Sequence record: PP968062.1
Strand: one strand, 5' to 3'
DNA length: 64,000 bases
How positions within the stretch are numbered: the stretch's first letter is position 1; each line of letters opens with the position of its first letter. Position numbers and translations under genes: made by a program. Shown here piece after piece: positions 17,170-64,000 of the stretch. Under the pieces are notes generated by a model. The model was not told where the DNA came from. It was given only the letters and a program-made list of their open reading frames with translations, and ran no database searches.

Positions 17170-18744
17170 TTACACTAGAGTCTCGTATGTACGACCCTGC
17201 CCGCCGTTGTACAGCCAAGCAATCTCTTCAGGTTCCAATGCGCGCCAGCAAAGACCAACTTCATCCGCTGCTCCATTATAGGAAGTGTTACTGAAGATCT
17301 CACCGAATTGCAGTCCGTTATAAGAAGCACTACTTGGAGTAGTAATCTCACGACGGATCATAGGGCCGCCATTGAGAGAGATCTCAAGGTAACGATCTTT
17401 AACTTGGAGTACCAGGAACTGCCATTGCCCATTACCCATACCTTGACCACCAGTAGACACAGTTGTCTCAGCGTCGTTAGCATTTCGGGTAAAGCCGCGC
17501 CATCCATTCGCTGCTTGATACGACAGTCCAAACTTACAACCGTAGTACTGGCCGAACTTACCGAGAGTAAGAACGTATTCTTGTGCAACAGAAGGAGCGT
17601 TGACTTTGAACCAGCCGAACATAGAGATACCACTATTATAACTACCGAAGCTACCTTCGGCGCCAGAAGCTTTAATAATGTTCAGAGCTTTACCGACTTT
17701 ACCGTCAATGGTGTTATCGGAGTTCAAGCCAAAGTTCATACCACCGTGAGAGTCGATAGCGATACCTTCCATAGCGTACCAACTAATCAGGTTATCCTTG
17801 ATCTCACTACCAATGGTCTTACCCTGTATCAAATCACCAGAGATAGCCCATTCCCACTTACTGGTTGCGGTATCCCAACGGATTGCAGTACCACGAACTG
17901 TACCACCTTGTTTAATGGCGATAACGCTCCAATCGGGGAGGTAGTATGTATTACGAGATAAAGCTTCAGGATCGAACGGTAGGTCATGACCAGAGTTATT
18001 CACAATAATCCATTCATGTCCCGGTACTAATACTTCAGAATCATTCTCGTGATATGCTGGCCAGTTCAAAGAAGGAATCTTTTGACCTTCAGGGATAGGC
18101 TCTAGTACATAGACTCGATTACCGTTCTGTTGCACCGTGAAAGAAACATACGAACCTGGGTTACCAAACTGACCGGGAATATAGTTGGAGATGTTACCTT
18201 CGAAGATATGTTCATAGAACTTATCACCGGGTTCTGGATCTGGTCCAGGGGTATTACCGCCAGAGTGAAGCCATAGTACCAATTCACCCGTGAAATAGAT
18301 GGAGTTGTAGACAGACTTCAATAGCCAGTTAGGTCCGACCTTACCACCGGTATAATCGATAGAGGCTTCGGCAGTCCAAGCATCGGTCTTAGTCAAGTTC
18401 AACTTAGACTTCTTGGCTACTTCATTCAGTACAGCTACGGAGGTTTTCATCCCTTGAACTTTCGTTACTTCTTCAGCAGTCCAGTAAGGATTTTTAATGT
18501 AATCGTTGATATTGAACCGATCATAATAGAAATCATAGATCGTATCGTACGACGTACCTTTCTGAATGAAGACCACAGACTGGTTGGGACGTTCTTGCGT
18601 AGCGGCCGGTTGTACGCGCAACACACGTGAGTTACTCTGAGTTAGACCCAGACTAGCGTATCGAGCGTTAATCGCTTTATAAAGCCCAACAAGGGGGTTA
18701 GCCCCTAACGGGTTGTCCGCCAGAGAAATAGAAATTTGACGCAT
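17170..18744 (-). CDS. Virion protein with N-terminal phiKZ-type attachment domain and C-terminal LamG/ConA-like lectin domain
   Basis: N-terminal YYDRFNI motif; PGPDPEPG linker; C-terminal SMFGWFK..WQFLVL..ISLNG..ADEVGL..ALEPEEIAWLYNGG is the LamG pattern. Confidence 0.8.
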   Translation of the reverse strand: MRQISISLADNPLGANPLVGLYKAINARYASLGLTQSNSRVLRVQPAATQERPNQSVVFIQKGTSYDTIYDFYYDRFNINDYIKNPYWTAEEVTKVQGMKTSVAVLNEVAKKSKLNLTKTDAWTAEASIDYTGGKVGPNWLLKSVYNSIYFTGELVLWLHSGGNTPGPDPEPGDKFYEHIFEGNISNYIPGQFGNPGSYVSFTVQQNGNRVYVLEPIPEGQKIPSLNWPAYHENDSEVLVPGHEWIIVNNSGHDLPFDPEALSRNTYYLPDWSVIAIKQGGTVRGTAIRWDTATSKWEWAISGDLIQGKTIGSEIKDNLISWYAMEGIAIDSHGGMNFGLNSDNTIDGKVGKALNIIKASGAEGSFGSYNSGISMFGWFKVNAPSVAQEYVLTLGKFGQYYGCKFGLSYQAANGWRGFTRNANDAETTVSTGGQGMGNGQWQFLVLQVKDRYLEISLNGGPMIRREITTPSSASYNGLQFGEIFSNTSYNGAADEVGLCWRALEPEEIAWLYNGGQGRTYETLV

Positions 18745-18792: not shown

Positions 18793-20100
18793 TTAGGACA
18801 GTTCTTCTACGCTGGACTTAGCCACGACCATGTAGTTGACGTTCTTGAAGTAAGCGCTTGCATAGATCACGTTATCACGGATCATACGAGATACACCTTG
18901 AGGAACGGAACTATAACGAGTCATCCCTTCAGCTGCTTTTAACAGCTTCGAGAACAGCATCATCCATTCAATCGTTTCAGGCGAAGATTTGTTGATATCA
19001 CCAGTGTCATTAGTTACCAGTTGATAGTCTTTAAACTTCTGCGAGAATTGAGTGATGCCATTACGGTTCTGCGGGTTACCCAGCACAGAGAATGCAATGG
19101 ACTTGTAGGTGTTCGAAGAGAGTTCGAACTTGTTGTCTACGTAGGTCTGAGTATAACCAGGACCACGTGCAGTGCGACGGATCAGGGGCAGACGCTTGCG
19201 ATGGTCAACAGTAGGACTGTAAGTACCAGCACGATAGTCAGCTTGTTCGATGGAATACTGGTTCCAGAACGGAGTAAAGATGAACTCGGTCGTCATGAAC
19301 AGGTCAGGAAGAATAACTTCCCAGTCAGTCCGAGGATGAGTAGAGTCTTTCAGGAGTTCTTCAACGATCTTGTCCTTAATAAGGTCAGGGTTGTTACCTG
19401 CCTCACCATAGACGATCGCAATCCAGTAAGCCGGGAAACGCATGCTGTCATCACGAGGGTTGTGATATTCGAACATGAATGCCCGTTGATGGGTGTACGG
19501 ATACTGGGCACGCTTGGCTTGTACTTCCTCAATCTTTTCGACGAGGTCGTAATCAGCTAGCAACTGCTTAACGATAAGAGGGTCTTTGAAGAAGTCATCA
19601 AACGGAACGATCGGGTGAACGATCTCGATTACGTATTCATCGTACTGTGCTGCAAACGATTCGTCTGCAAGCCAAATGTTCATCTGGTTAGCTTCAGTGC
19701 CTACCAGTACGAACTCAACCCACTCGGGCATCCAGATACTACCGTTAGAGATCATTTGACCGCTACGGAAAGTCTTGATGACACCGTTGAATTCTGCCAT
19801 TACCAGCTGACGCAGTACGTTCGGATCAGAACCGATTGTACCAGCGATAGACTGCTGATAAATATATTCCCCAAGCTTCAGAACTTGATCTTTATTGTTA
19901 CCGGCAACATCAACGACGTTTCCATCCTTTACGCTATGAAAAGAAACAAAAACAACGTTTGGTGCGGACGTACCGGTGTGGAAAGTCTTGTCCTTTGCAT
20001 AGGTTGCGCTGTTCGACGAAAGTTCGCCGAGCTTCGCTACAGTTTCTGGGGCATTCGAAATGAGTGCAGGGAAACTATAAAAGCCTTTCAAATTGTACAT
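18793..20100 (-). CDS. Virion structural protein (435 aa, conserved phiKZ-like)
   Basis: Long ORF at the conserved position between the RNase H and head-protein genes. Confidence 0.65.
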   Translation of the reverse strand: MYNLKGFYSFPALISNAPETVAKLGELSSNSATYAKDKTFHTGTSAPNVVFVSFHSVKDGNVVDVAGNNKDQVLKLGEYIYQQSIAGTIGSDPNVLRQLVMAEFNGVIKTFRSGQMISNGSIWMPEWVEFVLVGTEANQMNIWLADESFAAQYDEYVIEIVHPIVPFDDFFKDPLIVKQLLADYDLVEKIEEVQAKRAQYPYTHQRAFMFEYHNPRDDSMRFPAYWIAIVYGEAGNNPDLIKDKIVEELLKDSTHPRTDWEVILPDLFMTTEFIFTPFWNQYSIEQADYRAGTYSPTVDHRKRLPLIRRTARGPGYTQTYVDNKFELSSNTYKSIAFSVLGNPQNRNGITQFSQKFKDYQLVTNDTGDINKSSPETIEWMMLFSKLLKAAEGMTRYSSVPQGVSRMIRDNVIYASAYFKNVNYMVVAKSSVEELS

Positions 20101-25501: not shown

Positions 25502-25850
25502 GGAAGGGGTCGTAATAGTCGACCCTATCCCGTCTGACCGAAGTCAACTAGGTTCTATTCACGATGCAGTTCCTCATATGCAGGAACTAGGCATTAATGA
25601 TCATAGCGATCTGATGGTGGATTCGAAACAGAACGATTGGTACAGTCGTTACAGAAACAGTCCGCAATACCAGCCAGTTATTGCACCACTGATCACGAGA
25701 CGTCCTATAACGCATCAGGGAGGCCGTGGATACGCTTCTGGACGCGGAGCTGAGGATTTGGACCTGAGTGACACAGTCTTTTCTGTAGAGGTCGCTGCGG
25801 CCCTTACCACTGATAGTAGTTCTCCCAGTGATTCTACTAGCTATGATTAA
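25446..25850 (+). CDS. Hypothetical protein with Ser-rich tail (134 aa); start uncertain
   Basis: Amphipathic N-terminus LKLFRWIW, tail DSSSPSDSTSYD, ends at a hairpin; overlaps UvsX by 56 nt. Confidence 0.55.
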   Translation: MMNVLKLFRWIWPKPKQPKEGVVIVDPIPSDRSQLGSIHDAVPHMQELGINDHSDLMVDSKQNDWYSRYRNSPQYQPVIAPLITRRPITHQGGRGYASGRGAEDLDLSDTVFSVEVAAALTTDSSSPSDSTSYD

Positions 25851-25884
25851 CAACATAGACGGGAGCTCGCGCTCCCTCTATGCC
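25851..25884 (+). terminator. Hairpin, conserved-flank family
   Basis: caacatagacgggagc-tcgc-gctccctctatgcc. Confidence 0.65.
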
Positions 25885-25898
25885 AAGTAGGTATCCCA

Positions 25899-26246
25899 AT
25901 GAACGTCTATACTTATCAAATCGCTAAATGGCGAAAGGTTAGACGGAAGCACATCTTTCCCTTGGATACAACTATAAAGAGTGGCGAAGAGCTATTAGCC
26001 CCTACCTGGAATATGGTAATGGGCCATAAAGCCGGAACGATCACTGACGAACAATACGAGGAGGTCTATATGGACCTTCTTGCCGAACGCTACGTAGCGT
26101 TCCCAGATTACTTCGAGTGGCTAACTGGGTTGGAAGAGGTTGCACTAGGATGTTACTGTCCAGCCGGAAAGTTCTGCCACCGACATTTGCTTGTTAAATT
26201 CTTAAAAGAAATAGTAGAGGTAAACTACCTAGGCGAAATAGAGTAG
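25899..26246 (+). CDS. DUF488-family protein (115 aa)
   Basis: LAPTW, Y..VY..LL, LGCYCP...CHRHLL. Confidence 0.75.
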   Translation: MNVYTYQIAKWRKVRRKHIFPLDTTIKSGEELLAPTWNMVMGHKAGTITDEQYEEVYMDLLAERYVAFPDYFEWLTGLEEVALGCYCPAGKFCHRHLLVKFLKEIVEVNYLGEIE

Positions 26247-26267
26247 TTACCTGATCAGGAAATTCCC

Positions 26268-26588
26268 ATGACTAACACCATTGATTACCGCGCTGTTATT
26301 TTCCAGCGTACTCGTGCCGTTGACGTTGAGGTTGCAGAGGATCTGTACCGACGTATGCCTGTTATCACCGATCTGGCAAACCTTAACCAGTTCTTCCATT
26401 TACTGTTGGCTCAATACAAGATCAACACTTTGGAACTACGGTGCACTCTTAACGAAGTGAATGACTTTGAAGTGTGGTGGCGGAATTTCTCCACTAACTT
26501 CATTCCTCTCTTCCGTAAGAAGCGCCTCCCTCCCTGTACTGATACCGCAGCGATGCCCATGTATCACTGCGAGTCTAAATCAATCTGA
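26268..26588 (+). CDS. Hypothetical protein (106 aa)
   Basis: SD agga; directly upstream of the RNAP subunit. Confidence 0.7.
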   Translation: MTNTIDYRAVIFQRTRAVDVEVAEDLYRRMPVITDLANLNQFFHLLLAQYKINTLELRCTLNEVNDFEVWWRNFSTNFIPLFRKKRLPPCTDTAAMPMYHCESKSI

Positions 26589-27300: not shown

Positions 27301-27777
27301 ATGGCTATTAACAATCCAGAAGCAGGTATTAGCGAAGTATTGCAGAATGCCCTAGGGGTTGCTATTAGTGAACTGGTATCTGTCGATGACTCTTTAGTTG
27401 TTGCACAGATCCTAGAGCATATTAGCGAACTTCGAAACAACATGATGATCTCCAGTTTTAACGATCGAGTTATCATCAATCAGATTTGGAGCGGTATCCG
27501 TTCTAAGCAAGATGTACTAGGTAGCTTACTGTCTACTGTTACGACCTTCACCATGGAGATCGAGAACGTAGATGTAGCTATTGAATATCTCTGTAAACGA
27601 ATCGTACCGTTTACTCCAGATTCGGCAATGGTTGACCGTGAACTACTGGGTAAGGCTGCTAATGTAGACGAGCTCTATGGTACGTTCCAACAGAATCATT
27701 GGTTGTTCTTCCTTGTGTATGCTTCTACACAACTTCGCCATGTTAACAACATTATTGCACAGGCGAAAATAGCATGA
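27301..27777 (+). CDS. Hypothetical protein (158 aa)
   Basis: Packed in the operon; ATGA overlap downstream. Confidence 0.75.
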   Translation: MAINNPEAGISEVLQNALGVAISELVSVDDSLVVAQILEHISELRNNMMISSFNDRVIINQIWSGIRSKQDVLGSLLSTVTTFTMEIENVDVAIEYLCKRIVPFTPDSAMVDRELLGKAANVDELYGTFQQNHWLFFLVYASTQLRHVNNIIAQAKIA

Positions 27778-28535
27778 TCAAACGTATTCTGGTTCCTCTT
27801 GATGTATTACTCGACACTCGTTTGGGTGTCATGCGTACGCTTAACAAGGAGGCAGCAGAACGATTGGTTTCCACAAAGGAATATTGGCTTCGTGAAAATG
27901 ACGACTGGACTGCCTTAACAGGCGGTCTAGTTACCACGGAGCAATTCAAAGAAGCTTATGCTGATCGTGGTGGGGATAACTCCGCTGATACTATCAACGC
28001 TTCTATCCTAACAGGTATCAGTCCGTTCTTGATGCGTATCCTTGCAGAAGACCATGTAAACAGAATGGATAACATGGGTAACCCTGAAGACGAGATTGGT
28101 TTAACCATTAACGTCTGGCCGTATAAACTCCCTGGAGATGTTGTCGATGATCTAGAGACAATTATCCAAGAGATCTATGGTGAGGAAATGCCCGTCGAAG
28201 TGGTTAGTCATCCTCTAGAGGAACTTACTCCTAAATTTCTGGATGCTCTCTACTCAATGTATCTTACTTATGATTTCCATGAGTGGATGCATACGCATTA
28301 TCTGGCTCTGTCTCAAGTACAGATGCCATGCTTTAACTTTATCGGACCTAAGCTATTCGAACGTGATGTTAGTAAACTCACCGTAGAAGAGAAGAAATTC
28401 GAACTATTCAAGTTCCGTGTTGAACGTTTGATTCATATGGACTTTGAATTCATTGATGCTAAATATTTCTCTATGTTAAGGCCCGGAGAAAATGGTATCG
28501 AGTTAGAACAAGACGACATAAAAGCCCAGGGTTGA
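27774..28535 (+). CDS. Conserved hypothetical protein, possible HAD-like fold (253 aa)
   Basis: N-terminal ILVPLDVLLDT resembles HAD motif I; stop lies inside a hairpin. Confidence 0.6.
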   Translation: MIKRILVPLDVLLDTRLGVMRTLNKEAAERLVSTKEYWLRENDDWTALTGGLVTTEQFKEAYADRGGDNSADTINASILTGISPFLMRILAEDHVNRMDNMGNPEDEIGLTINVWPYKLPGDVVDDLETIIQEIYGEEMPVEVVSHPLEELTPKFLDALYSMYLTYDFHEWMHTHYLALSQVQMPCFNFIGPKLFERDVSKLTVEEKKFELFKFRVERLIHMDFEFIDAKYFSMLRPGENGIELEQDDIKAQG

Positions 28536-28559: not shown

Positions 28560-31500
28560 TTAGTAGCCAGCACCTTTGGCACCGATCCATTCACTACCAT
28601 CCCACAGAAGGGTGATGACAGTTTTGGTGGCGGCCAGTTCAGGAGCAGTCGAATCATTCCACTTGAACTTACCGGTGAAGGTAGGCATTACAGCACCTGC
28701 CAGTACCAGTACAGCTGTGACCATACGACCAGTCGGACCATCGGCCAGAGTGATTGCACGTTGAGCAGAAGCATCGACGTTGTAGCACTGTTGGTTAGCC
28801 GGAGTCAGGGTGAATGCTGCGTTTACCGAAGAAGTCTTCAGGCTGTAGGTGTCGAAACCTTTAGTGATTTCTACCCAAGCAGAAGTACCAGCAGCGGTAG
28901 TCTGACGACCGAAGACCTTAGTAGCGTCAACAGCCGGTTCCGGAATGGTTACCAGTTCTTTCCACTCGCCTTTGGAACGAGTGTAGTTCTTGGCATCCGG
29001 AGCATCCGCAGCGATGATTGCAGCAGGTACTTCTACCCAGCTGGACACGCCAGCAACAGTAGTCTTACGAGCGTACAGTTTGTCATCGTTAGCGGTTTCA
29101 GGAACTACAGCAGCCCAAGCACCGTCTTTACGAGCGTATGCCTTACCATCACTTGCGGCGTCTTTGAAGATTTCAGTCTCAACCCAAGACTTAGTACCTT
29201 TCAGTACGAAGAACTTGTTCTCGTCGTTACCAGTCGGATTCGGGGCAGCGGGTACCCAAGAACCTTTAGAACGAGAGAAGACACCAGTGGCAGCAGCAAC
29301 GTCTTCAACTACAGCAATGCCGAGTTCGAACGGAGCCCACTCAGTAGTACCGTCAGCTTTACCTTTACGAACGTATTGTTCGCCTTCAGCAGCAGCTTCA
29401 ACTTCGTCTACGAGTAGCGGAGCCCAACCCATCTGGTAACGGACCATCTTCTTGTTCTGGTCGACGGTTTCTACTTCAGCAACCGGTACGTCCAGCAGTT
29501 GGATGAACTCTTTCCAGCCTTGAGCATCGCGATACCAAACCTTACCGGATTTGTCCAAGCACCAGTCGTCTTGTACACCGATAGTGTTGTTCGGGGTGTC
29601 TACGCCTTGCGGCAGAATTACCCAACGGGAACCTTTGTCACCCTTAGCACCTTGGATACCACGAGGACCAACGATACCCTGATCACCCTTATCGCCTTTC
29701 TCACCTTTAGCACCAACAGTGAAGCTACCCAGGTTCAGGTACTTCTCAGTGTCATCGGCACCATCAACAGCCCACACGTAAAGTTCTTTCGAACCTTCCG
29801 GACCTACAGAGTAAGCGTTACCTACTGTGTTAGTCGGATGTGCTGTTTTCAGAGCGGCTTCAGTCGGGTAGTCACCCATGATCTTGATGCCTTGGCCAAT
29901 TTCGCCTTGGTCACCTTTGATACCCTGAGGACCATCATCACCCTTCGGACCCTGGATGTTGAACGGACCGTCGTAGGTATTCGTCGAGCGGTTAGCTACG
30001 TAGATTACCTTAACAGTGTCATCACCTTGGATCTCGGAAACGATGTAGGCTTCGCCGTCAGCAGGATCGGTTTCACCAGCTACCAGTTCAGGTAGTTGAG
30101 ATACATCACCAACTTCACCAACGATACGCATGGATTGACCACGCTCACCTTGGTCACCTTTCTGACCGATAGGGCCTGCGGAAACGAACTGGGTACCGCT
30201 AACGTTTACGTAGACATCACCACCTTTAACAACAACGGCTTTACCTTTGTTGTCAGCCGAAGCCGGAGGTACTTCTTCTACGGTGTTAACGATGGCGATA
30301 ATCTCGAAGTTCTCACCTGGATCACCCTTAGGACCTGCGTCGCCAGTATCACCTTTCGAGCCGGCATCACCTTTGTCCCCTTTATCACCCTTGTCGCCTT
30401 TCGCACCAGTGTGAGTACCAAGGTCAACCCAGACACCATCGATGAACATGTAGAGGTGGCGGTTATCAGCAGCTACCCAAGCTTCCTGTTCTTGCGGATC
30501 CGGAATTGCTTGGATTGCAGCCAGGTCAGCCAGTACGCCGGAGATTACAAGGTTCTTACCACCGTCACCGGTGTCACCTTTATCCCCTTTCAGACCAGTA
30601 TCACCCTTGTCACCTTTATCCCCTTTGTCGCCTTTCTCACCCTTGAACTGGCCAAGGTTGATCAGGTCGCCTTCGGAAGCAACGGGAGTTTTGGAAACGT
30701 AGTACAGAGTGTTAACGTCACGGACAGCGTAGGCTTTCTTGATAACAAGAGTAGAGCCAGCAGCCAGCAGGTCAGTCATGGTCGGATAGGTACCGAGGAT
30801 TTCCAGGTTTTCACCAGGAGCACCATCGACACCGTTGGCACCAGGCTCACCCGGATCACCTTTATCGCCCTTGTCACCTTTAGGACCGTCGCCACCAAGG
30901 ACGCCGTCTTCACCCTTATCACCCTTCGGACCTTGCCAGGTACCCAGGTCCATCCACTTGTTCTCGTCTACGGAGAACACGAACAGATGACGAACACCTT
31001 CTACCATTACGGAGTAGGCTTCTTCGGGTTTGGAATCACCAGCCAGGGGAAGATCACCTACGGAAGCCAGGTCAGCTTTGATGGTGAACGGTGTGGCATC
31101 TTTACCGGGGTTACCGGTATCGCCTTTCAGACCCTTATCGCCTTTATCGCCCTTGTCACCAGTATCACCTTTAGGACCCTGGGGACCCTGCGGTACGATC
31201 TGAATGTATGCGTAGTTGTCCGGGAAGATATCCTCTTCACCAGCTTTCAGCATGAAGGTGTAAAGAGCGTTCTTCCAACCATAGGTATCGCCTTTGGCGG
31301 CCAGCGGAGGCAGTTCTTGGTTGTCGGGCCATTGACCACGGATAACCAGACCAGTACCTTCCGGTCCACGCATATCACCGGAGTTAATCCACTGACCTTT
31401 ATCCGGCGAACCAGATTCAGGAGCAGACCAAACCATCAGGACGGTGTCAGTAGCGCCACGGACGAACCAAGCATCACCGAATTCCCAAGTATCGATGGGA

Positions 31501-31871
31501 GCAATGTTGGTATCGAAGTCGTCTTTAGTTACGGTACTTTTGATATTGGTAACAGGGCCCGGTTCACCCGGATCACCTTGCAGACCAGTATCACCTTTAG
31601 CGCCGTCTTCGCCTTTCAGCGATTCCAGCCACTCGGCTTCTGTACCTTGATAACCGGCATCAACTGCCAGTTGGAATGCGGATTTACCATCCGCACCGTC
31701 GTCACCTTTCAGACCTTCAATTTCTGTCGGATCTTTAAAAGTGGTAGCCAGGCCAGCCCCGGTCGAAACCGGGATCTTGCCTGCAACTACCGCAAGAGGA
31801 TCGTCCTCGGTCGAAATACGCTTAGGTAGTTCACCGTTAACGAAAATTTCAAATGCGGATTCACCAGCCAT
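28560..31871 (-). CDS. Collagen-like tail fibre protein (1103 aa)
   Basis: About 8 Gly-X-Y runs (GDK-rich) separated by roughly 50-aa domains, about 8 DxKxYxRKxxxW repeats, C-terminal fibre tip domain. Confidence 0.85.
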   Translation of the reverse strand: MAGESAFEIFVNGELPKRISTEDDPLAVVAGKIPVSTGAGLATTFKDPTEIEGLKGDDGADGKSAFQLAVDAGYQGTEAEWLESLKGEDGAKGDTGLQGDPGEPGPVTNIKSTVTKDDFDTNIAPIDTWEFGDAWFVRGATDTVLMVWSAPESGSPDKGQWINSGDMRGPEGTGLVIRGQWPDNQELPPLAAKGDTYGWKNALYTFMLKAGEEDIFPDNYAYIQIVPQGPQGPKGDTGDKGDKGDKGLKGDTGNPGKDATPFTIKADLASVGDLPLAGDSKPEEAYSVMVEGVRHLFVFSVDENKWMDLGTWQGPKGDKGEDGVLGGDGPKGDKGDKGDPGEPGANGVDGAPGENLEILGTYPTMTDLLAAGSTLVIKKAYAVRDVNTLYYVSKTPVASEGDLINLGQFKGEKGDKGDKGDKGDTGLKGDKGDTGDGGKNLVISGVLADLAAIQAIPDPQEQEAWVAADNRHLYMFIDGVWVDLGTHTGAKGDKGDKGDKGDAGSKGDTGDAGPKGDPGENFEIIAIVNTVEEVPPASADNKGKAVVVKGGDVYVNVSGTQFVSAGPIGQKGDQGERGQSMRIVGEVGDVSQLPELVAGETDPADGEAYIVSEIQGDDTVKVIYVANRSTNTYDGPFNIQGPKGDDGPQGIKGDQGEIGQGIKIMGDYPTEAALKTAHPTNTVGNAYSVGPEGSKELYVWAVDGADDTEKYLNLGSFTVGAKGEKGDKGDQGIVGPRGIQGAKGDKGSRWVILPQGVDTPNNTIGVQDDWCLDKSGKVWYRDAQGWKEFIQLLDVPVAEVETVDQNKKMVRYQMGWAPLLVDEVEAAAEGEQYVRKGKADGTTEWAPFELGIAVVEDVAAATGVFSRSKGSWVPAAPNPTGNDENKFFVLKGTKSWVETEIFKDAASDGKAYARKDGAWAAVVPETANDDKLYARKTTVAGVSSWVEVPAAIIAADAPDAKNYTRSKGEWKELVTIPEPAVDATKVFGRQTTAAGTSAWVEITKGFDTYSLKTSSVNAAFTLTPANQQCYNVDASAQRAITLADGPTGRMVTAVLVLAGAVMPTFTGKFKWNDSTAPELAATKTVITLLWDGSEWIGAKGAGY

Positions 31872-34339
31872 TATACAACTTCCTCAAGTTCAACGCGCAT
31901 CAGACCGGATGTGTTAGATACGGAGTTAGCGGCGTCGCAGTTATACCAACTATTGCCATTCTTGACGGTGTAAGTGTTTACAGCGTCGGCATCGTCAGCT
32001 TTATAGGTGAAGTTCAGAGAGCCGCTGGCACCTTTCGACAGGTTAGAGCAACGCAACTTACCAGTCATGGTCACGGTGGTACCAATAGCACCTTCACGGT
32101 TAGGGAAAGCAGCAATAGACATGGTACGCAGAACGAAACCACCGATGGTGTATTCACCACCAGACTTCAGTGCGTTGACAGCAACACCAGCAAGGCCTTT
32201 ACCCGATACACCAGCAAAGTTGAAGATACCCTTGGCATCGTTATCATGAACGAGCAGGGTACGTGTCCATACTTTCTTGGCTGCATCACCAACCCATGCC
32301 GCAGCATCCCAATTTCCGCCAGGAGCATCCATCGAAGGTGCTTCAGCCAGAGACTGAGTAGAGGTGATGGTGATGGTGTGACGCTGAACAACAGTACCTG
32401 CATTACCACCGGAGCGCAGACGAGCAGCCGGAGTAGTGACAGTCAGTTCCGGAGCAACGTTAGCGATCTTAACGATCGTGGACGCAGTTGCGGAGCTACC
32501 GTTGGCAGCACGTTGTGCAGTGATAGTCAGGTTGTTAGTCAGGTCATTGTAATCACCTGCCAGATAGCTAACAGTTTTAGCTGCTTCTACTTGGGTCGGA
32601 TTGGTTACAGTCAGCTGACCATTTGCCGAGGTGTAAGTAGCGCTGGAAGCGTTAGTTACAGTGTTCGCTACGGTTGCATCTTCACCAGCTTTGACGGCTT
32701 GTTGGCCAGCCGGGTAAGTTACAGTACCGAAGGAGATAGTCGGCTTCAGGTTGTTCAGCTTAACGACGTTAACTTTCTCAACAGTACCAGCCACATCGGA
32801 CTTATACCAAGCAGAGAAGCTACCGGAAGCTTTCTTAACACGGATGCTGAACGGATGGTTGGCAGCGGTGTTACCACGGTCGGCAATAACCAGACCAGTA
32901 ACGTTGTGCGTCTTACCGGCAGTCAGAGTACCAGTCTTAGCAACGAATGCACCTTCATCACGGATTTCATAACCAACAACATCTTGGTCAGAAGTAAAGG
33001 TGATGGACATTACGTCACCGGCTTTCAGTTCGGTCTGTGCACCCGGATAGTTACCAGTGAAGGTAGCGGCAGTGATTACAGGAGCAGAATCCATAGTCAC
33101 GTTAGCAGCAGCCTTAGCGCCGTCTTCGTGAGTAGCTTCTACTTTAACCGGATCTGCGCCAACCGGAGCCGGCAGATTGACAGTTGCTTCACCAGTCCAC
33201 ATCGGAGCATTAGCGCCGGCGGTCAGTGCAACATCAACACCGTTTACTTTAACAACCGGACGATAGTTGGTGTGGCCAGTGATAGCAGCGACTTTTACCT
33301 TAACGTCACGAGTGGACGAGGAGCACTGTACCAGGGAGAAGCCATCAGCCGACTTAACTTTGTCGCCAACGTTGTCAGCAGCGTTTACCGGAGTGATGTC
33401 AGTGATGAATACACCACCGTTAACGCCTTTCGGTTCAGCCAGGGATTTGTTGAACTCTTCTTCAGTACCGATGAAGCCACCGTCTACAGCGGATTCATAT
33501 GCCGACTTACCATTAGCACCTTCAAGGCTTTCCAGCCATTGTTCTTCAGTGCCCACAAAGCCGCCATCTTTAGCGATCTGATAAGCGGACTTACCATCAG
33601 CGCCGTGAAGGCTTTCGAGATATTCAGCTTCGGTGCCTTGGAAACCAGCATCAACTGCCAGTTCATAAGCGGACTTGCCGTCAGCACCATCAACACCGTC
33701 ATCACCTTTGGTGCCGTCAACGCCATGTAGGGATTCCAGGTACTCAGCTTCGGTACCAGTGAAACCACCTTCTACTGCGAGAGCATAGGCAGACTTACCA
33801 TCGGTGCCAGTATCACCCTTATCGCCTTTGTCCCCTTTATCACCGGTGTCGCCTTTCTCACCTTTCAGCGAGGCAACGAACTCAGCTTCGGTACCAGTGA
33901 AACCGGTATCCAGGGCGGATTGATAAGCAGATTTACCAACGAGAGTTGCAAGGAATTCTTGTTCAGTGCCGGTGTAGCCATTATCAACAGCTACTTCATA
34001 GATGGATTTACCTACGGCACCATCTTTACCGTCATCGCCCTTGAGGGAAGCGAGGAATTCGTCTTCGGTACCTACGAAACCTTGCTGGAGAGCAAGCTGA
34101 TAAATACCTTGACCTTTCAGGCTTTCGAGCCACTGTTGTTCAGTGCCAACGAAACCATTCTTAACAGCAACCTCGTAGGCCGAGAGACCTTCGTTGTTGC
34201 GGATCTTGGAGACCATGAGACGGAAGTTCTTATAAGAACCATCGGGCTCACGACGAATAACTTCTACAAACTCTTCACCAGTGATGGTGTTAAGAGGCTG
34301 CATTCCGGAAATCATGCCCGGACTGGATTTAATGGCCAT
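31871..34339 (-). CDS. Fibre-associated virion protein with GKSAY repeats and C-terminal Ig-like beta domains (about 822 aa)
   Basis: 8 copies of GKSAYxxAxxxGFxGTExExLxSLxG, short GDK run; SD agga before MAIKSS; TAATG overlap with the next gene. Confidence 0.8.
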   Translation of the reverse strand: MAIKSSPGMISGMQPLNTITGEEFVEVIRREPDGSYKNFRLMVSKIRNNEGLSAYEVAVKNGFVGTEQQWLESLKGQGIYQLALQQGFVGTEDEFLASLKGDDGKDGAVGKSIYEVAVDNGYTGTEQEFLATLVGKSAYQSALDTGFTGTEAEFVASLKGEKGDTGDKGDKGDKGDTGTDGKSAYALAVEGGFTGTEAEYLESLHGVDGTKGDDGVDGADGKSAYELAVDAGFQGTEAEYLESLHGADGKSAYQIAKDGGFVGTEEQWLESLEGANGKSAYESAVDGGFIGTEEEFNKSLAEPKGVNGGVFITDITPVNAADNVGDKVKSADGFSLVQCSSSTRDVKVKVAAITGHTNYRPVVKVNGVDVALTAGANAPMWTGEATVNLPAPVGADPVKVEATHEDGAKAAANVTMDSAPVITAATFTGNYPGAQTELKAGDVMSITFTSDQDVVGYEIRDEGAFVAKTGTLTAGKTHNVTGLVIADRGNTAANHPFSIRVKKASGSFSAWYKSDVAGTVEKVNVVKLNNLKPTISFGTVTYPAGQQAVKAGEDATVANTVTNASSATYTSANGQLTVTNPTQVEAAKTVSYLAGDYNDLTNNLTITAQRAANGSSATASTIVKIANVAPELTVTTPAARLRSGGNAGTVVQRHTITITSTQSLAEAPSMDAPGGNWDAAAWVGDAAKKVWTRTLLVHDNDAKGIFNFAGVSGKGLAGVAVNALKSGGEYTIGGFVLRTMSIAAFPNREGAIGTTVTMTGKLRCSNLSKGASGSLNFTYKADDADAVNTYTVKNGNSWYNCDAANSVSNTSGLMRVELEEVV

Positions 34340-34429
34340 TACGTATTCCTTTGTTGGAGAGAGTCTTCGCAACTACTCGTGCACGTCTTAAAAGGAAAAT
34401 AAGACTCATAGAGTAGTGTATTATTTCAG

Positions 34430-34466
34430 CAACATAAAGGAGTCCCTAATGGGACTCCAGTATGCC
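34430..34466 (-). terminator. Hairpin, conserved-flank family
   Basis: caacataaaggagtccc-taat-gggactccagtatgcc. Confidence 0.7.
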
Positions 34467-34504
34467 TTTTAGAGAGCATCTATCTGGAGTTGCGACTACG
34501 AAAC

Positions 34505-35521
34505 TTATGCCACTACGGCTGGGTCGAGTTTCCAAGCACCGGTATCATCTTTAGTGAAACCAATTTGTGCCAGGAGAGCATGGACGCCCTTAGAGGTAGC
34601 AAAGCCTTCGTCATCGAGACCTTCGATGACAGTAGCTTCATCAGCTTTAGTCGGGATTTCCAGATCAGGGAGTTGTTCTGCTTTCAGCTTGCCGTTCTCA
34701 TCGAGATCGGCTTTAGCTGCGAGAGCATCAACAAGTCCAGTAACCTTATCAACGGCAATACCAGCGTCAATGATGGCTTGAACTTCATCGGCGTTAAGAC
34801 CGCCAACTTGTGCACCACCCAGAGTTACGCCATCATGCAGATAGAGCTTCTTGTGTTCCAGGTCAATGAAGAACGTACCCTCAGCACCTTTGTGCGCAGC
34901 TGCTTCTAGAGCAGAACCACGACGGTGTTGAAGGAGTAGTTTAGCCACAGCATCAGCGCGACCTTCTTCAAACGAAACTACTTTACCGTCTTCAGAAACA
35001 ACAACACCAATTTGTTGCAGAGTTGCCATTACAGCGCTCGGAACGTCTTTGGTGTAAATCTTACGATCCAGTTCTTTCTTCTGTTGACGGGAGATCGGTT
35101 TGTCTGCGTCGGCAGTGTTATCGACCTTGTCAAGTTTCGCAAACGAGAGATCCAGAATCTTCCACTCAGGAAGACCAATCTCGTTTACGGTCAGAACCAT
35201 GCCTTTGTCCTCAGGGAGGATTTCGAACAGGGGAGCGGTAGCAGCAGACCACTGGGCCTCGGTACCTTCGTAACCTTGTTCTACGGCAGTTTGATAAGCT
35301 GACTTACCAACAAGGGATTTCAACCACTCTTCTTCAGTACCAGTGAAACCACCTTTGACGGCGCCGTCAAAAGCAGAAGCACCTACACGTAGCTTATCAG
35401 CAAGTACACGGAAGTTCTTGAAAGAACCGTCGGCATTGCGAGCAACAACCTCTACGAACTCCTGCCCAGTTAGTGCAGACAGGAGGTCGAGTTCAGAAAC
35501 CTTTTTCTTTTCATCAGCCAT
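34505..35521 (-). CDS. Fibre-associated virion protein (338 aa)
   Basis: N-terminal KVSEL..LTGQEFVEV domain, 2 GKSAY repeats, LDKVDNTADADKPIS motif, Mtd-N-like LQHRRG..LYLHDGVTLGG. Confidence 0.75.
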   Translation of the reverse strand: MADEKKKVSELDLLSALTGQEFVEVVARNADGSFKNFRVLADKLRVGASAFDGAVKGGFTGTEEEWLKSLVGKSAYQTAVEQGYEGTEAQWSAATAPLFEILPEDKGMVLTVNEIGLPEWKILDLSFAKLDKVDNTADADKPISRQQKKELDRKIYTKDVPSAVMATLQQIGVVVSEDGKVVSFEEGRADAVAKLLLQHRRGSALEAAAHKGAEGTFFIDLEHKKLYLHDGVTLGGAQVGGLNADEVQAIIDAGIAVDKVTGLVDALAAKADLDENGKLKAEQLPDLEIPTKADEATVIEGLDDEGFATSKGVHALLAQIGFTKDDTGAWKLDPAVVA

Positions 35522-35655
35522 CTTAGATGTCCTTCAGGGTTGGCTGCGTTACACTTATTCTTTTAACCCAATGACACCACCTCCAAACCTGGGGAAGTAT
35601 CAGGTTAACGAAATCCTTCTCTTAGTGTTACCACTGATAAAAGAACAGGTGGACG

Positions 35656-36435
35656 CTAAGCCCGATGTTTCGAAACTTTATCTTCGAACAACTTGTAGAT
35701 CTCAGCTAGGGTACGAGGTACACCTTTATTGCTAAAGATCGACGGGTTTGCTTTAGCCGGTTTCGGGAATAGAACTTCACCTAGAGTTTTCTGGTCTGCG
35801 GAAAGGAACTTCTTAGCGCCGGAGGCACCGAGGAAGTGAGCGAGGTATAGATCGGTATCAGTCGGCTCGCGATCGAGCACAGGACGCAATACAGACGCAT
35901 TACCTTTGAGGAACTCTGCGCCCATGAGAGCATTGACACGAGGATCTTTACGGAGAGCCCTAGTGGGGTCTTTTGGGATTCCGTATTTAGAACCATGTGC
36001 TTTGATCATGTCGTCCCAAGTTGCATCCAGGAACTGGAACCAACCAGTAGCCGTAGACGTGCCTGCTTTGACGAGATAATCGAATGCCGATTCAATGGAA
36101 GCAAATGTAGCCAGCAATCGAGGTTCGACTCCGGTCATTGCTCCTACCGCATTCAGTGTGGGCATTGCAGCAGCCCGAGATTTGTTAGCAGCCGGTTTAG
36201 GAATAGCTTCCCATTTAGCAGGAACTTGTGCAGAAGAGCTCAGTTCAGCCAGAGTTGCAGGCCCAACCTTTCCGTCAACACCCAGACCCCGAGAGGTTTG
36301 GAAATCACGAACAGCTTTCTCTGTATCTCCACCGAAGATTCCGTCAGTGCTAACTGCGTATCCTGCGACCCGAAGTTTCATTTGTAGATCTTCCACAGCA
36401 GAGCCGCGGTCGCCACGTTTGAGTACAGTACCCAT
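35656..36435 (-). CDS. Modular endolysin: peptidoglycan-binding domain plus lytic transglycosylase (phiKZ gp144-like)
   Basis: LKRGDRG..DGIFG..T..AVRDFQ; ANKSRAAA; FASIESAF (catalytic Glu); ATGWFQF; DLYLAHF. Confidence 0.95.
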   Translation of the reverse strand: MGTVLKRGDRGSAVEDLQMKLRVAGYAVSTDGIFGGDTEKAVRDFQTSRGLGVDGKVGPATLAELSSSAQVPAKWEAIPKPAANKSRAAAMPTLNAVGAMTGVEPRLLATFASIESAFDYLVKAGTSTATGWFQFLDATWDDMIKAHGSKYGIPKDPTRALRKDPRVNALMGAEFLKGNASVLRPVLDREPTDTDLYLAHFLGASGAKKFLSADQKTLGEVLFPKPAKANPSIFSNKGVPRTLAEIYKLFEDKVSKHRA

Positions 36436-36450
36436 GTCTGTCTCCAGTAA

Positions 36451-36984
36451 TTAATGTTCCAATTCTCGAATTACTCCATCTTCCATCAGACGGTAACCAC
36501 CATCTTCCAGGAGACGAGCATATTGGTTGCCTTCTACCATTTCGACAGTAATCATAGTCGAACCGTAGTAAGCGTAACTACCAGTCATCGCGACGAGTTC
36601 ATATTGGAACACGTCGTCTTTTGTATTGATAACAGTGGTAGAGAAGGATAGATCGTCCGGACCGAAAGTCATCTTACGGGAGCGGTTGATCTCTTCTGCG
36701 ATGGCCGCAGGTGTAGCCACCCCAGATAGCTTAATGGACGGATTAGGTCCAAGGCAGTCAGGGTGAGACAGTTCCAGACGACGATAAACGAACCAGTCTT
36801 TGAGACTGGCTTTATTATCGATCATCTCGATATAAGTACGTCCCGGAACACCCGAAGTCGGACTGAAGAACATGTCTTCAAAGTTTACGAATTCGTCTTG
36901 AATGTTCTTATGCTTAGACGTTTCCCGAATCAGACGGCACAGGGCCGCACGAGACGGGAGGTTATAAGGAAAACGATCGCTCAT
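36451..36984 (-). CDS. Putative virion adaptor protein with C-terminal RLLEDG repeat (177 aa)
   Basis: VYRRLEL motif as in other virion proteins here; ends RLLEDGGYRLMEDGVIRELEH. Confidence 0.65.
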   Translation of the reverse strand: MSDRFPYNLPSRAALCRLIRETSKHKNIQDEFVNFEDMFFSPTSGVPGRTYIEMIDNKASLKDWFVYRRLELSHPDCLGPNPSIKLSGVATPAAIAEEINRSRKMTFGPDDLSFSTTVINTKDDVFQYELVAMTGSYAYYGSTMITVEMVEGNQYARLLEDGGYRLMEDGVIRELEH

Positions 36985-37040: not shown

Positions 37041-37064
37041 AGCCCCTCCAATTAAGGAGGGGCT
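37041..37064 (-). terminator. Hairpin terminator
   Basis: agcccctcc-aattaa-ggaggggct after 37075..37479. Confidence 0.7.
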
Positions 37065-37074
37065 AATATTATTG

Positions 37075-37479
37075 TTACTGAGTAGAAATTACCATCTTTA
37101 AGATCTCAATGAGACCAAGACCTAGGGTCTTAAAGATATCAGCAACTTCACTACTCATCGGTCCGTCTGTATTGATAACGCTTACAACAACACCAGTGGA
37201 CAGAATAGCAAGCAAAGCACTTGCAGTCAAAATGGAACTGCGGTAAGTATCACTAGCTCGATGACCAGTGTATTCCTTTTCCAGTAACACGTTCTGTTTG
37301 CTAAGATCAGACAGCGAATAGATCTCTGTCAGAACTTCATCAGCAGTTGTATTACCGTCAACACGTGCACTACCATCGGCATGCAACATACCGTTCAGGT
37401 ACGCTACGATTTGACGATAGTTAGGAGCCTTCGACAAAGGCTTATTGCCCATGTCACTTAGTATTTGTTCTAGAGTCAT
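37075..37479 (-). CDS. Membrane protein, holin or antiholin candidate
   Basis: Two C-terminal hydrophobic helices; lies between the spanins and the endolysin. Confidence 0.45.
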   Translation of the reverse strand: MTLEQILSDMGNKPLSKAPNYRQIVAYLNGMLHADGSARVDGNTTADEVLTEIYSLSDLSKQNVLLEKEYTGHRASDTYRSSILTASALLAILSTGVVVSVINTDGPMSSEVADIFKTLGLGLIEILKMVISTQ

Positions 37480-54478: not shown

Positions 54479-55357
54479 ATGTACATCACGAGAGACTACC
54501 TCCAGTCTACTCCTTGGACATCCATCATTGACATGATTAATGATGCTTGTTTTACCCAGCTGTTTCCGGGTAGTACCAAGCTTGAGAAGTTCGAACCTTT
54601 GAATGGGACCAAGACTCGTATTGTCATTAGTGTTAATCGCAGTGAGGCTCCCGGCAATCTGTTGCCGGAAGTCCCGCTCGATACTTATACGTACGATAGA
54701 CTGGATCTAACTACGTTCTTCCGTCAAACTCAAGTTCTGGATATTTCCGGGATTGATGTTCCATTCTCCTCGATGGATATCGTAGAGAAGCTATCGGAGT
54801 TGAACAACATTGTTTTTGATGTGGATGACTTCGAACACACTGAGTATAATGTCTTCAATCAAGAGTTCATTCTACGGGCTAACAAAGAGTCTCTACGTTT
54901 CGTGGGGTTCTTAAGAGTACGTCTTATCAATACAATCCGTGTTGATCTTTCTGTACAATCCAAGGTTGAATTCCCTACCGTAGGTAAACCAGACAACGTT
55001 ACTGCTGGTGACGTTACTCTAATCAATGGGACCTACTACATCACTGGTTATGACTTCTCTGCACATAGAGAATACCTACGTCATCAGACTAAGGCTGGTA
55101 CACATCCAGATCCTAAGAAGATGGCAGCTATTCTCGCTGAGGTGACGAAGAAGCCTTGGACTGCGGTAAAGACACCAGCTTCGCACAACATCGCTTATAC
55201 AGAAGAATTCGGGGTATTAAAGTATCGCGTCATTTATAACGGTGTCGTACTTCCACGCTTCACTAAGCGGACTGATATTCAAAACGTTCTAGTCATCGAA
55301 CTGCACAAGACTCTGTGTCAAGATGTGGTTGGTGAAATTCGTATTCACTATAACTAG
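54479..55357 (+). CDS. Virion structural protein (292 aa)
   Basis: YTYDRLDL motif family. Confidence 0.7.
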   Translation: MYITRDYLQSTPWTSIIDMINDACFTQLFPGSTKLEKFEPLNGTKTRIVISVNRSEAPGNLLPEVPLDTYTYDRLDLTTFFRQTQVLDISGIDVPFSSMDIVEKLSELNNIVFDVDDFEHTEYNVFNQEFILRANKESLRFVGFLRVRLINTIRVDLSVQSKVEFPTVGKPDNVTAGDVTLINGTYYITGYDFSAHREYLRHQTKAGTHPDPKKMAAILAEVTKKPWTAVKTPASHNIAYTEEFGVLKYRVIYNGVVLPRFTKRTDIQNVLVIELHKTLCQDVVGEIRIHYN

Positions 55358-55365
55358 GAGTGATT

Positions 55366-55794
55366 ATGCACGTATCAAACATGCGGGTTAAACTACTCCA
55401 GCAGTTTAGTCTACAGAACAAACTAGAACCCGCGATTCGACCTGAAGATGTTATCTGGACAAACATTGAAATCTGGTTAGAGAATGGTAATAACTCAAGA
55501 GCTACCATTCAAGCTCTGGCAAGTAGTAATCATTTCAAAGGACAGCGTACTATCAATTTCAATCGATACAGAATCGAAGAAGCATTGCGTGGCGTTGTTA
55601 TTCCCGGAAAACGTTCTGACTACTCGACTATCCACGATGTAGTTAAAGTACTGCGGGATAAGGTTACTGCACCAGTAGATACCGAAGAATTCCTTGATGG
55701 TCCTCTTGTTGGTAACACGGTTATTCTGAAGCCGACTATTCGCTCCATGGCGTACATTCCTACGTCGCAGATCGAACTAAGCTTCGCTGAATAA
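55366..55794 (+). CDS. Virion structural protein (142 aa)
   Basis: SD aggag; FNRYRI variant of the same domain. Confidence 0.65.
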   Translation: MHVSNMRVKLLQQFSLQNKLEPAIRPEDVIWTNIEIWLENGNNSRATIQALASSNHFKGQRTINFNRYRIEEALRGVVIPGKRSDYSTIHDVVKVLRDKVTAPVDTEEFLDGPLVGNTVILKPTIRSMAYIPTSQIELSFAE

Positions 55795-62980: not shown

Positions 62981-63004
62981 AGCAGTCAGCTTTACACTTC
63001 CGCT

Positions 63005-63088
63005 TTACCGCTCCAGGCGGCGGGCCACTCCGTCTTCAAGATAACGGGTAGTTCCATTCTCAAGCTTACGGAAGGTTCCCTTTCCAGT
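63005..63088 (-). other. Putative in-frame readthrough extension of the major capsid protein (27 aa + TAA)
   Basis: After ...AVKG-TGA the same frame reads TGKGTFRKLENGTTRYLEDGVARRLER-TAA. Confidence 0.6.
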
Positions 63089-64000
63089 TCAACCCTTAAC
63101 GGCGTCGACCAGGGGCTTGTTCCACTGAGACTCACCCATCACTTCTTCGAAGCCAGTAACGTCGAATTCGAGAGCGAACGGGATGTTGTTTACGTGCAGG
63201 TTGAACGGAATCGCAGCGATTTCGCGAGTAACTTGCTGGCCACCACGGGTGATCGGCAGGTCGGCGATTACGGTCGATACGTAGTAGAATTGACCGAAGC
63301 TGAGGATGTCGTTCTCTTGCGGGTTCTTACGAGTCGGAACCACTACCAGTTTACCGTCGAACAGTTCGTTGTTGGTCGATACCAGGTCGTATTCCAGGTA
63401 AGCGCCCAGGGTACGATCGTCGCCCTTGGTCATCAGGTAGTTAGCGATCTCTTTGTCCGAGCAGAACAGGAACATCGGACGCTCGTCTTGGTTGCCGGAG
63501 ATCACACGGAAGGCTGCTTCGATGTTGGATTCACGGTAGGCCGGGAACAGTACACCTTTAACAGCGTTCAGGATTGCCGAGCAGACATCTTCCCAACGGT
63601 CTTGCGACTTCAGGGTGTCGATCATGTCAGGCAGGTGCAGCTTCTTGTAGCGGTAGGTCGGACGCATTACTGCGGACAGAGCACCTTCAACAGCACCGAA
63701 CTGCGGACGGTCGAAACCGTTAGCGGTTACTTCTTTCAGCTGAGCCAGGTAGTTCAGCAGGCGCTTAACAGCGTTGTTGCTGTTACGGATGTTGGTGTTG
63801 ACAGTCAGAGCCTTAACAACTTCGCCCGGACCTTCTTCGTCCATGGTGCTCAGCGGCAGGGTTACCGGAGCGTGCATCGGAATCGGGTGACGGAATTGCA
63901 GGGCACGAGTTTGCAGCAGGTGACCACGCTGACGACGGTTGGTGTTGGTGAAGCGGGTATCGAGGTCGAAACCAACGATTTCCATTTCGCCAATGCTGTC
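63089..64000 (-). CDS. Major capsid protein, C-terminal part (phiKZ gp120-like); continues beyond the window
   Basis: Frame open to the window edge; extreme codon bias; RFTNTNRRQRG, AIPFNLHVNNIP; position next to gp123-like gene. Confidence 0.88.
   Translation of the reverse strand, partial: DSIGEMEIVGFDLDTRFTNTNRRQRGHLLQTRALQFRHPIPMHAPVTLPLSTMDEEGPGEVVKALTVNTNIRNSNNAVKRLLNYLAQLKEVTANGFDRPQFGAVEGALSAVMRPTYRYKKLHLPDMIDTLKSQDRWEDVCSAILNAVKGVLFPAYRESNIEAAFRVISGNQDERPMFLFCSDKEIANYLMTKGDDRTLGAYLEYDLVSTNNELFDGKLVVVPTRKNPQENDILSFGQFYYVSTVIADLPITRGGQQVTREIAAIPFNLHVNNIPFALEFDVTGFEEVMGESQWNKPLVDAVKG

Follow-up and report, generated by a model that had tools for sequence, protein, structure and literature searches.

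A DUF7941-type peptide on gp143 and a candidate UGA readthrough extension of the capsid protein in Pseudomonas phage HPP-Temi

A small protein encoded beside the fibre genes of a jumbo phage ends in a repeated peptide, a copy of which stands in frame behind the stop codon of the major capsid gene, and this raises the question of which partner the two peptides might dock into. The stretch of DNA concerned (64,000 nucleotides, hereafter the window) corresponds at 100% identity to positions 124001-188000 of PP968062.1, the 302,719 bp genome of Pseudomonas phage HPP-Temi (genus Pawinskivirus), which encodes both the chimallin shell protein and PhuZ and is therefore a nucleus-forming relative of phiKZ. 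Five minus-strand genes at 28560-36984 encode a 177-amino-acid (aa) protein, an endolysin and fibre proteins of 338, 822 and 1103 aa, among which the 177-aa protein, the endolysin and the 822-aa and 1103-aa fibres are by tblastn and synteny the counterparts of phiKZ gp143, gp144, gp145 and gp146, respectively. A first-pass annotation had proposed that the tail of the 177-aa protein plugs into a domain shared by two of these fibres, and that a readthrough form of the capsid protein carries the same plug to the head. The reading towards which we lean on balance places the socket elsewhere: readthrough of the capsid UGA would put a docking peptide of the DUF7941 family on a few capsid subunits and recruit gp143-type proteins to the head.

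A repeat peptide on gp143 and behind the capsid stop codon

The tail of the 177-aa protein (residues about 155-177) consists of three 8-residue repeats and is kept in all 84 homologues found among 5.8 billion proteins, with Arg 157, 165 and 173 invariant in 81/81 aligned homologues and Glu 160, 168 and 176 present in at least 90%. A two-repeat pattern occurs at only two places in the 302.7 kb genome, namely the gp143 tail and the in-frame codons that follow the UGA with which the major capsid protein gene (the gp120 homologue) ends. Similarly, a profile of 76 gp143-family tails, from which the protein of HPP-Temi itself was excluded, gave its best score to the gp143 homologue (expect value (E) 1.7e-12) and its second best to the segment behind the capsid stop (E 3.7e-8) among 12,865 six-frame stop-to-stop segments of the genome, with the third at E 1.5. 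In phiKZ-clade genomes, the extension comprises 26-30 open, in-frame codons, varies in length by whole codons only and always follows a UGA (9/9). The ratio of nonsynonymous to synonymous change (dN/dS) is 0.37 in the extension versus 0.21 in the last 30 capsid codons, at a dS of about 1.2, which is saturated, and because of this ratio the gp143 tail and the extension are, at the sequence level, one conserved peptide module under protein-level selection. Covariation of the extension with the gp143 tail within the clade, judged by eye, gave no clear pattern. The shared peptide of the first-pass annotation thus stands, and is broader than was proposed, while its pairing with a fibre domain is not supported.

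The iterative profile links and the predicted N-terminal fold place the 177-aa protein in the DUF7941 family. Pfam PF25613 matches it weakly (E 0.014, 15.3 bits; gathering cut-off 27), a precomputed match to PF25613 is present in 13/84 homologues, and BLASTP against all open reading frames (ORFs) of the window gave no paralogue, the link to DUF7941 being seen by profile and fold methods only. Jackhmmer searches seeded with Goslar gp31, gp33 and gp34 and with the gp127 homologue reached the protein at E 1e-15 to 1e-26, and joined it to three further proteins of the window, the gp127 homologue, the gp126 homologue and a 524-aa protein. This agrees with the earlier description of a 'YxRL-type' domain which recurs in other virion proteins of the window and is followed by an RLLEDG-repeat tail, the former being the DUF7941 N-terminal domain and the latter the three 8-residue repeats. 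The AlphaFold2 (AF2) model of the protein has a mean predicted local distance difference test score (pLDDT) of 88.6, with 90-95 in the N-terminal domain and 77-81 in the tail, where bridge residues occur at 8-residue spacing; a Foldseek search with this model returned PHIKZ127 (PDB 9xqd_0; E 8.4e-7, template modelling score 0.57/0.65) as the sole match below 1e-3. In the literature, phiKZ gp126, gp127 and gp143 are listed as DUF7941 members (preprint 10.64898/2026.04.21.720040), and gp127 is located at the outer edge of the baseplate (phiKZ atlas; preprint 10.64898/2026.04.21.720040). The 177-aa family carries a virion structural protein annotation in several phages.

Among the further members, the 524-aa protein is annotated as hypothetical and continues after its DUF7941-like domain with about 370 residues of unknown fold; a sequence search of it against solved structures gave no match, and it is not an evident gp157 homologue. 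A weak match (E 0.0097) was also recorded between the gp143-family profile and PDB 9gb2_M, a chain named 'gp66 - Triplex 2 protein'.

Readthrough of the UGA is the simplest way in which the peptide could be made on the capsid protein, so that this part of the first-pass proposal is retained, without support for its link to the fibres. The post-UGA extensions of HPP-Temi, phiKZ and Goslar contain no methionine codon, which makes separate initiation unlikely, and a separate small gene for the extension was rejected on this ground. The base after the UGA is never U in the 13 genes read; in enterobacteria, termination is weaker in the context of a non-U fourth base. In the record, a 47-aa 'hypothetical protein' is called at 62992-63135 (minus strand), in a different frame from the capsid gene, whose end it overlaps, and this call is probably spurious because the capsid frame is the one conserved across relatives.

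The same arrangement recurs in other chimallivirus lineages. In 26 capsid genes, sampled by hand from annotated phage records together with one IMG/VR relative (IMG/VR scans with three capsid C-termini gave close relatives only), UGA was the stop codon in 16/16 genes with an extension (seven lineages; 15-48 codons) and UAA in 10/10 genes without one, an association to which the sample holds no exception. Outside the phiKZ clade, UGA and an extension are found in Goslar, in pEa_SNUABM_54 and its relative, and in RP12, PhiEaH1, Haymo and PCH45, while the UAA genes belong to RTH11, CR5, Eowyn, Deimos-Minion, FBKp24, SPFM3, phiEaH2, RSF1, Yong-MS32 and AH04 and are followed by 0-10 in-frame residues with no motif. 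The motif of the extension varies by lineage and resembles DUF7941 tails or linkers. For example, the capsid gene of Goslar ends in UGA followed by a 28-codon extension, entirely unlike the phiKZ-clade motif, which resembles the C-terminal tail of gp23, a 180-aa DUF7941 protein whose gene adjoins the endolysin. Similarly, the extension of Erwinia phage pEa_SNUABM_54 and its IMG/VR relative matches the tails of short DUF7941 proteins of pEa_SNUABM_54, and in Goslar, an Erwinia phage, PhiEaH1 and PCH45 the extension copies an ordinary DUF7941 linker of the same genome. In RP12, PhiEaH1, Haymo and PCH45, the 15-48 codons behind the UGA carry a short 'x-G-F' core, which is present in the extensions of all six non-phiKZ lineages, as in the DUF7941 tails or linkers of Goslar and pEa_SNUABM_54, compared with 2.1% of background segments. 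In a search of 7,182 segments with a profile of seven DUF7941 linkers, capsid post-stop segments accounted for four of the five best non-training matches.

Some of these genomes contain variants of the arrangement. The extension of Serratia phage PCH45 has 48 codons, about twice the usual length, with the docking-type motif at its start. In pEa_SNUABM_54, one protein (25505-26458) apparently has two DUF7941 N-terminal domains joined by a linker and another (27467-28057) has a tail in which the docking motif occurs twice; single-chain prediction of such natural constructs could reveal the geometry of docking.

The docking partner and its alternatives

In AlphaFold 3 predictions, DUF7941 linkers dock head-to-tail on the next N-terminal domain; purified Goslar gp22 forms filaments, Goslar virions contain about 2,140 (±50%) copies of gp23 and about 580 of gp22, and a gp126-gp127 pair has been fitted into unexplained density at the phiKZ baseplate edge (preprint 10.64898/2026.04.21.720040). 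Because the capsid extension copies the predicted docking segment and changes with it lineage by lineage, the simplest reading is that extension and DUF7941 tails would both dock at one site, the DUF7941 N-terminal domain. For the phiKZ clade, gp143's own domain is the expected partner, because the three-repeat version is present only on gp143 and the capsid extension, the gp127 homologue retaining an ordinary DUF7941 linker.

On this basis, a small share of ribosomes would read through the UGA and provide a few capsid subunits with the peptide on their C-terminal arm, and the peptide would find its socket in a DUF7941 N-terminal domain, most likely that of gp143. With both socket and peptide on gp143, further copies could add head to tail, and the capsid would recruit or prime DUF7941 chains in a number set by the readthrough rate. 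The phiKZ capsid protein has been modelled to its last residue, and its C-terminal arm forms a central bundle in the hexons and touches the external gp244 at the pentons (phiKZ capsid map literature), a geometry which is compatible with peptide display. The N-terminal fold that the gp143 homologue shares with PHIKZ127 also favours a DUF7941 socket, and that phiKZ can dispense with gp143 agrees with a role in decoration.

Several points weigh on the other side. No conserved RNA structure was found behind the UGA (folding z-scores +0.3 to -4.7), on which ground selenocysteine and a stimulatory hairpin were both rejected, there is no opal-suppressor tRNA among the seven phage tRNAs, and the level of readthrough could be very low. 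The literature searched reports no extended capsid protein in virions, nor was any mention of capsid-gene readthrough in jumbo phages found there or in annotations. The maps published for the phiKZ and Goslar capsids name no DUF7941 protein among the components, which is weak evidence because sparse, flexible chains are lost in icosahedral averaging. The docking of the LEDG-type tail is an analogy drawn from predictions for other DUF7941 members (preprint 10.64898/2026.04.21.720040), and experiments give gp143 a cytoplasmic role with the holin (PMC12894885). In the comparison between lineages, the 'G-F' pattern was defined after the data had been seen, which makes its nominal probability too optimistic, the motif matches of RP12 and Haymo are singly not significant, and Goslar gp23 is closer in sequence to gp126 than to gp143, which leaves the orthology of the short tailed proteins uncertain. 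The wider statement is accordingly put forward tentatively, as a possibility that stops just short of probable: in several Chimalliviridae lineages, including phiKZ and Goslar, an unannotated programmed readthrough of the capsid UGA may display a mimic of the DUF7941 linker, the head may also anchor the DUF7941 filament 'cloud', and in the phiKZ clade the socket protein may also talk to the holin.

The role with the holin gives rise to the first alternative, in which the 177-aa protein is only a cytoplasmic holin regulator and tail and extension serve lysis timing, for example through capsids that titrate the regulator, or have no virion role. The 177-aa gene lies between the genes for the class III holin and the endolysin, and phiKZ gp143 expressed from plasmids brings holin triggering forward by 10-15 min, blocks a truncated holin and has the cytoplasmic domain of the holin as its predicted partner (PMC12894885). 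This explanation is nevertheless unlikely, as several phages have members of the family annotated as virion structural proteins, its fold is that of the baseplate protein gp127, and the capsid extension of other lineages mimics the linkers of abundant virion DUF7941 proteins. A plug-like stretch in the HPP-Temi holin's N-terminal domain is not conserved in phiKZ, Noxifer or a metagenomic relative and has no profile score, and was dropped as a coincidence. The holin and capsid roles of gp143 are not exclusive; the holin-regulating activity may be a second use of the DUF7941 domain, and lysis timing could conceivably be tied to capsid production.

Alternatively, the peptide could bind the capsid itself, for instance at the hexon-centre pore, in which case gp143-type proteins would be hexon-centre decorations and the extension a plug on the same chain. 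In phiKZ, the central bundle of six C-terminal arms leaves a pore of about 9 Å, and Goslar gp23 and the capsid protein have copy numbers of the same order. High occupancy would be visible in the maps of phiKZ (3.5 Å) and Goslar, however, and these list outer decoration proteins and no DUF7941 density on the hexons, so that binding to the capsid itself appears improbable.

The third alternative is the one from which the study of this locus started, in which the 338-aa and 822-aa fibres receive the peptide in their N-terminal domain, gp143 holds them on the tail and readthrough capsid protein holds them on the head. Its descriptive part is borne out, since the first 89 residues of the 338-aa and 822-aa fibres are 49% identical (blastp E 8e-23) and the collagen-like fibre downstream (28560-31871) contains eight Gly-X-Y runs (Pfam Collagen E 1e-25). 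The genes are adjacent and on one strand, and the N-terminal module occurs on different fibres (76-1,509 residues), nearly always at residue 1, in only 38 clusters among 1.84 billion representative proteins, which suggests a common docking site. In addition, gp145 and gp146 are unplaced in phiKZ, where the twelve resolved baseplate fibres are gp131/133/134/135 (phiKZ atlas). The LEDG-type peptide and the fibre domain are found together on every checkable contig; the readable contexts of the domain are all phiKZ-like, one contig having the gp142-143-144-145 order and the gp143 tail, and tblastn finds the domain only in Pseudomonas phiKZ-like phages (19 records). Since both features are confined to this one clade, their co-occurrence says nothing about pairing.

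The remaining evidence argues against a fibre socket. Five transposon insertions are tolerated in phiKZ orf143 and none in gp145 and gp146 (phiKZ literature), and gp143 is therefore not an obligatory anchor of those essential fibres. None of the 38 clusters has the fibre domain fused with either a DUF7941 domain or the peptide, the 1103-aa collagen-like fibre has a different N-terminus to which the fibre-domain profile gives no match, and the pieces read from Goslar, Erwinia and Cronobacter phages lack the fibre domain, while the capsid extension is kept in other lineages and there mimics an ordinary DUF7941 linker. Nothing else links domain and peptide: the AF2 model of the 338-aa fibre, a monomer from a 13-sequence alignment, has a mean pLDDT of 49.7 and is unusable for examining the pairing, sequence searches of the 338-aa and 822-aa fibres against solved structures gave no match, and literature searches on capsid fibres in phiKZ-like phages yielded nothing useful. 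The peptide is thus given a small chance of binding the fibres, which would rather be separate attachment modules whose common N-terminal domain probably fits one common site.

Finally, an untranslated post-stop stretch, as a relic of a longer capsid gene or a 3' untranslated region, would agree with the lack of conserved stimulatory structure and suppressor tRNA and with the different small ORF annotated in the record, and is very improbable given the amino-acid conservation at saturated synonymous change, the whole-codon length differences, the exclusive link of UGA and extension across the 26 genes and the way in which the extension follows the DUF7941 tail motif of each lineage.

Genes and features of the window

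The features discussed are collected in Table 1. In phiKZ, a transcription start is located upstream of orf143 (phiKZ literature), and the gp144 endolysin doubles as the structural wedge of the neck whisker collar (2026 phiKZ atlas); the phiKZ gp144 gene (33289-34071) is the homologue of the endolysin gene at 35656-36435, so that the 'lysis cassette' neighbours of the fibres are virion parts too. Behind its N-terminal domain, the 822-aa fibre continues with repeats and short collagen runs. The 338-aa fibre has no phiKZ counterpart, and its full-length relatives are found only in PA1C-like phages, Psa21, D6 and RVTF4. Multiplication of the fibre module was seen in some relatives; for instance, two consecutive genes (1125 and 162 aa) of Logan contig SRR24956278_23258 (2305-6231) both begin with the N-terminal domain. 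The record gives the 338-aa and 822-aa fibre genes (34505-35521 and 31871-34339) the label 'tail sheath', which is corrected here by their fibre repeats and collagen runs and by the position of the actual sheath gene at 295098-297191 of the record.

TABLE 1. Positions of the capsid, DUF7941, fibre and lysis features within the window, with the basis of each assignment.
Feature	Position	Strand	Basis or remark
gp143 homologue, 177 aa	36451-36984	-	50% identity to PHIKZ143 over full length (residues 1-176), tblastn
gp143 homologue residues 1-151, DUF7941 N-terminal globular domain, candidate socket	36532..36984	-	tblastn, jackhmmer, AF2, Foldseek
gp143 homologue residues 152-177, C-terminal tail, putative docking peptide	36454..36531	-	Repeats in all 84 homologues; stop codon 36451-36453
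Major capsid protein gene, 3' part, gp120 homologue	63089..64000	-	Pfam PhiKZ_MCP 6e-112; runs off the window; stop UGA 63089-63091
27 in-frame codons after capsid UGA	63008..63088	-	Copy of the putative docking peptide; next stop UAA 63005-63007
gp127 homologue: DUF7941 N-terminal domain, ordinary linker, C-terminal domain	54479..55357	+	Pfam E 5.8e-20 (72.3 bits); PDB 9xqd_0 E 9e-63
gp126 homologue: only DUF7941 N-terminal domain, without docking peptide	55366..55794	+	Pfam E 6.4e-6; jackhmmer
524-aa protein, DUF7941-like N-terminal domain, fourth member in the window	17170..18744	-	jackhmmer E 1e-15 to 1e-22, several seeds
338-aa fibre	34505..35521	-	Shared N-terminal domain, residues 1-48 (35378-35521), then two ~25-aa repeats
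822-aa fibre, gp145 homologue	31871..34339	-	Shared N-terminal domain, residues 1-50 (34190-34339); PHROG 15433; synteny with PHIKZ145
1103-aa collagen-like fibre, gp146 homologue	28560..31871	-	Pfam Collagen E 1e-25
Endolysin, gp144 homologue	35656..36435	-	Pfam PG_binding_1 3e-17 and SLT 1e-5 (lytic transglycosylase)
gp142 homologue, class III holin in phiKZ	37075..37479	-	PHROG 14484, alignment with PHIKZ142
Terminator-like hairpin between holin gene and 177-aa gene	37041..37064	-	Nine-pair stem, then T run
Terminator-like hairpin between 338-aa and 822-aa fibre genes	34439..34458	-	Eight-pair stem, then T run

Compared with PA1C-like phages, the 8.4-kb region at 28560-36984 has a DNA identity of about 82%. 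The fibre genes diverge most, with ~82% DNA identity and 81% identity of the 338-aa protein, compared with 96.6% for the 177-aa protein and 99% for the capsid C-terminus (63089-63985), and such divergent fibres beside a conserved 177-aa protein and capsid C-terminus are the expected pattern of host-range genes. Elsewhere in the window, ARAGORN called a tRNA-Gly (GCC) at 19864-19944 (minus strand), within the gene of a 435-aa virion protein (18793-20100); the record annotates no tRNA there, and the call is probably a false positive.

Significance and comparison with known systems

If the capsid extension is produced and docks as proposed, a recoding event would be added to the capsid gene of phiKZ and Goslar, two much-studied jumbo phages, and the abundant, unplaced DUF7941 proteins would gain a second anchoring point. 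About 2,500 copies on six sites need filaments of about 3 µm (arithmetic of preprint 10.64898/2026.04.21.720040), and capsid anchors would make this copy number reasonable. The DUF7941 filament 'cloud', thought to make the first contact with the host, would be anchored on the head as well as on the six baseplate sites, and the phage would set the number of attachment sites through the leakiness of a stop codon. In the phiKZ clade, a socket protein that contacts the holin could link lysis timing to capsid production. The proposal also suggests what to seek in existing mass-spectrometry and cryo-electron microscopy data, and for annotation it argues against the small overlapping ORF at 62992-63135.

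Readthrough of a coat protein stop codon is known from Qβ (A1) and from luteoviruses, where the coat gene ends in a leaky UGA and gives rise to a minor, C-terminally extended coat protein which makes up a few percent of the shell and has a surface function. The capsid gene described here shares with them the UGA at its end and a conserved in-frame stretch, whose translation we infer from the sequence. Readthrough in Qβ requires neither a stimulatory RNA element nor a dedicated suppressor tRNA. Unlike these small RNA viruses with their long readthrough domains, the chimalliviruses are tailed double-stranded DNA jumbo phages with a T=27 capsid, and the extension has 15-48 residues and resembles the docking peptide of another virion family. 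In tailed phages, recoding by frameshifting is known from T7 gene 10B and from the capsid and tail proteins of the Listeria phages PSA and A118. As in T7 10B and PSA/A118, recoding at the 3' end of the capsid gene would give a minor, longer capsid protein, with the difference that stop-codon readthrough rather than frameshifting is proposed here, and we know of no case in which the extensions of T7 10B or PSA/A118 mimic the docking peptide of a partner.

Dispensable proteins displayed on the head, such as T4 Hoc and the phi29 head fibres, could aid first host contact and bind the finished capsid lattice directly. Capsid fibres are also present on phage 7-7-1 (10.64898/2026.04.21.720040), and the proposed arrangement resembles all three in displaying a dispensable protein on the head, and differs in that the attachment site itself would be made by recoding of the capsid gene. 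The chimallivirus DUF7941 filaments belong to the same family, the tail of the 177-aa protein occupying the position of the linker, and the tail of the phiKZ clade is a diverged three-repeat version in comparison with the Goslar-type linker; unlike here, the filaments described for Goslar are anchored only at six baseplate sites, and the word readthrough is absent from that work (10.64898/2026.04.21.720040). phiKZ gp143 is a direct homologue of the 177-aa protein (50% identity over the full length) with the same holin-gp143-endolysin gene order, and its published description is silent on the C-terminal repeats, on any association with the virion and on the DUF7941 fold (PMC12894885). Thus, readthrough-extended coat proteins and recoded capsid proteins of tailed phages are both known, whereas an extension this short, imitating the docking peptide used by a filament-forming family of virion proteins, would be new.

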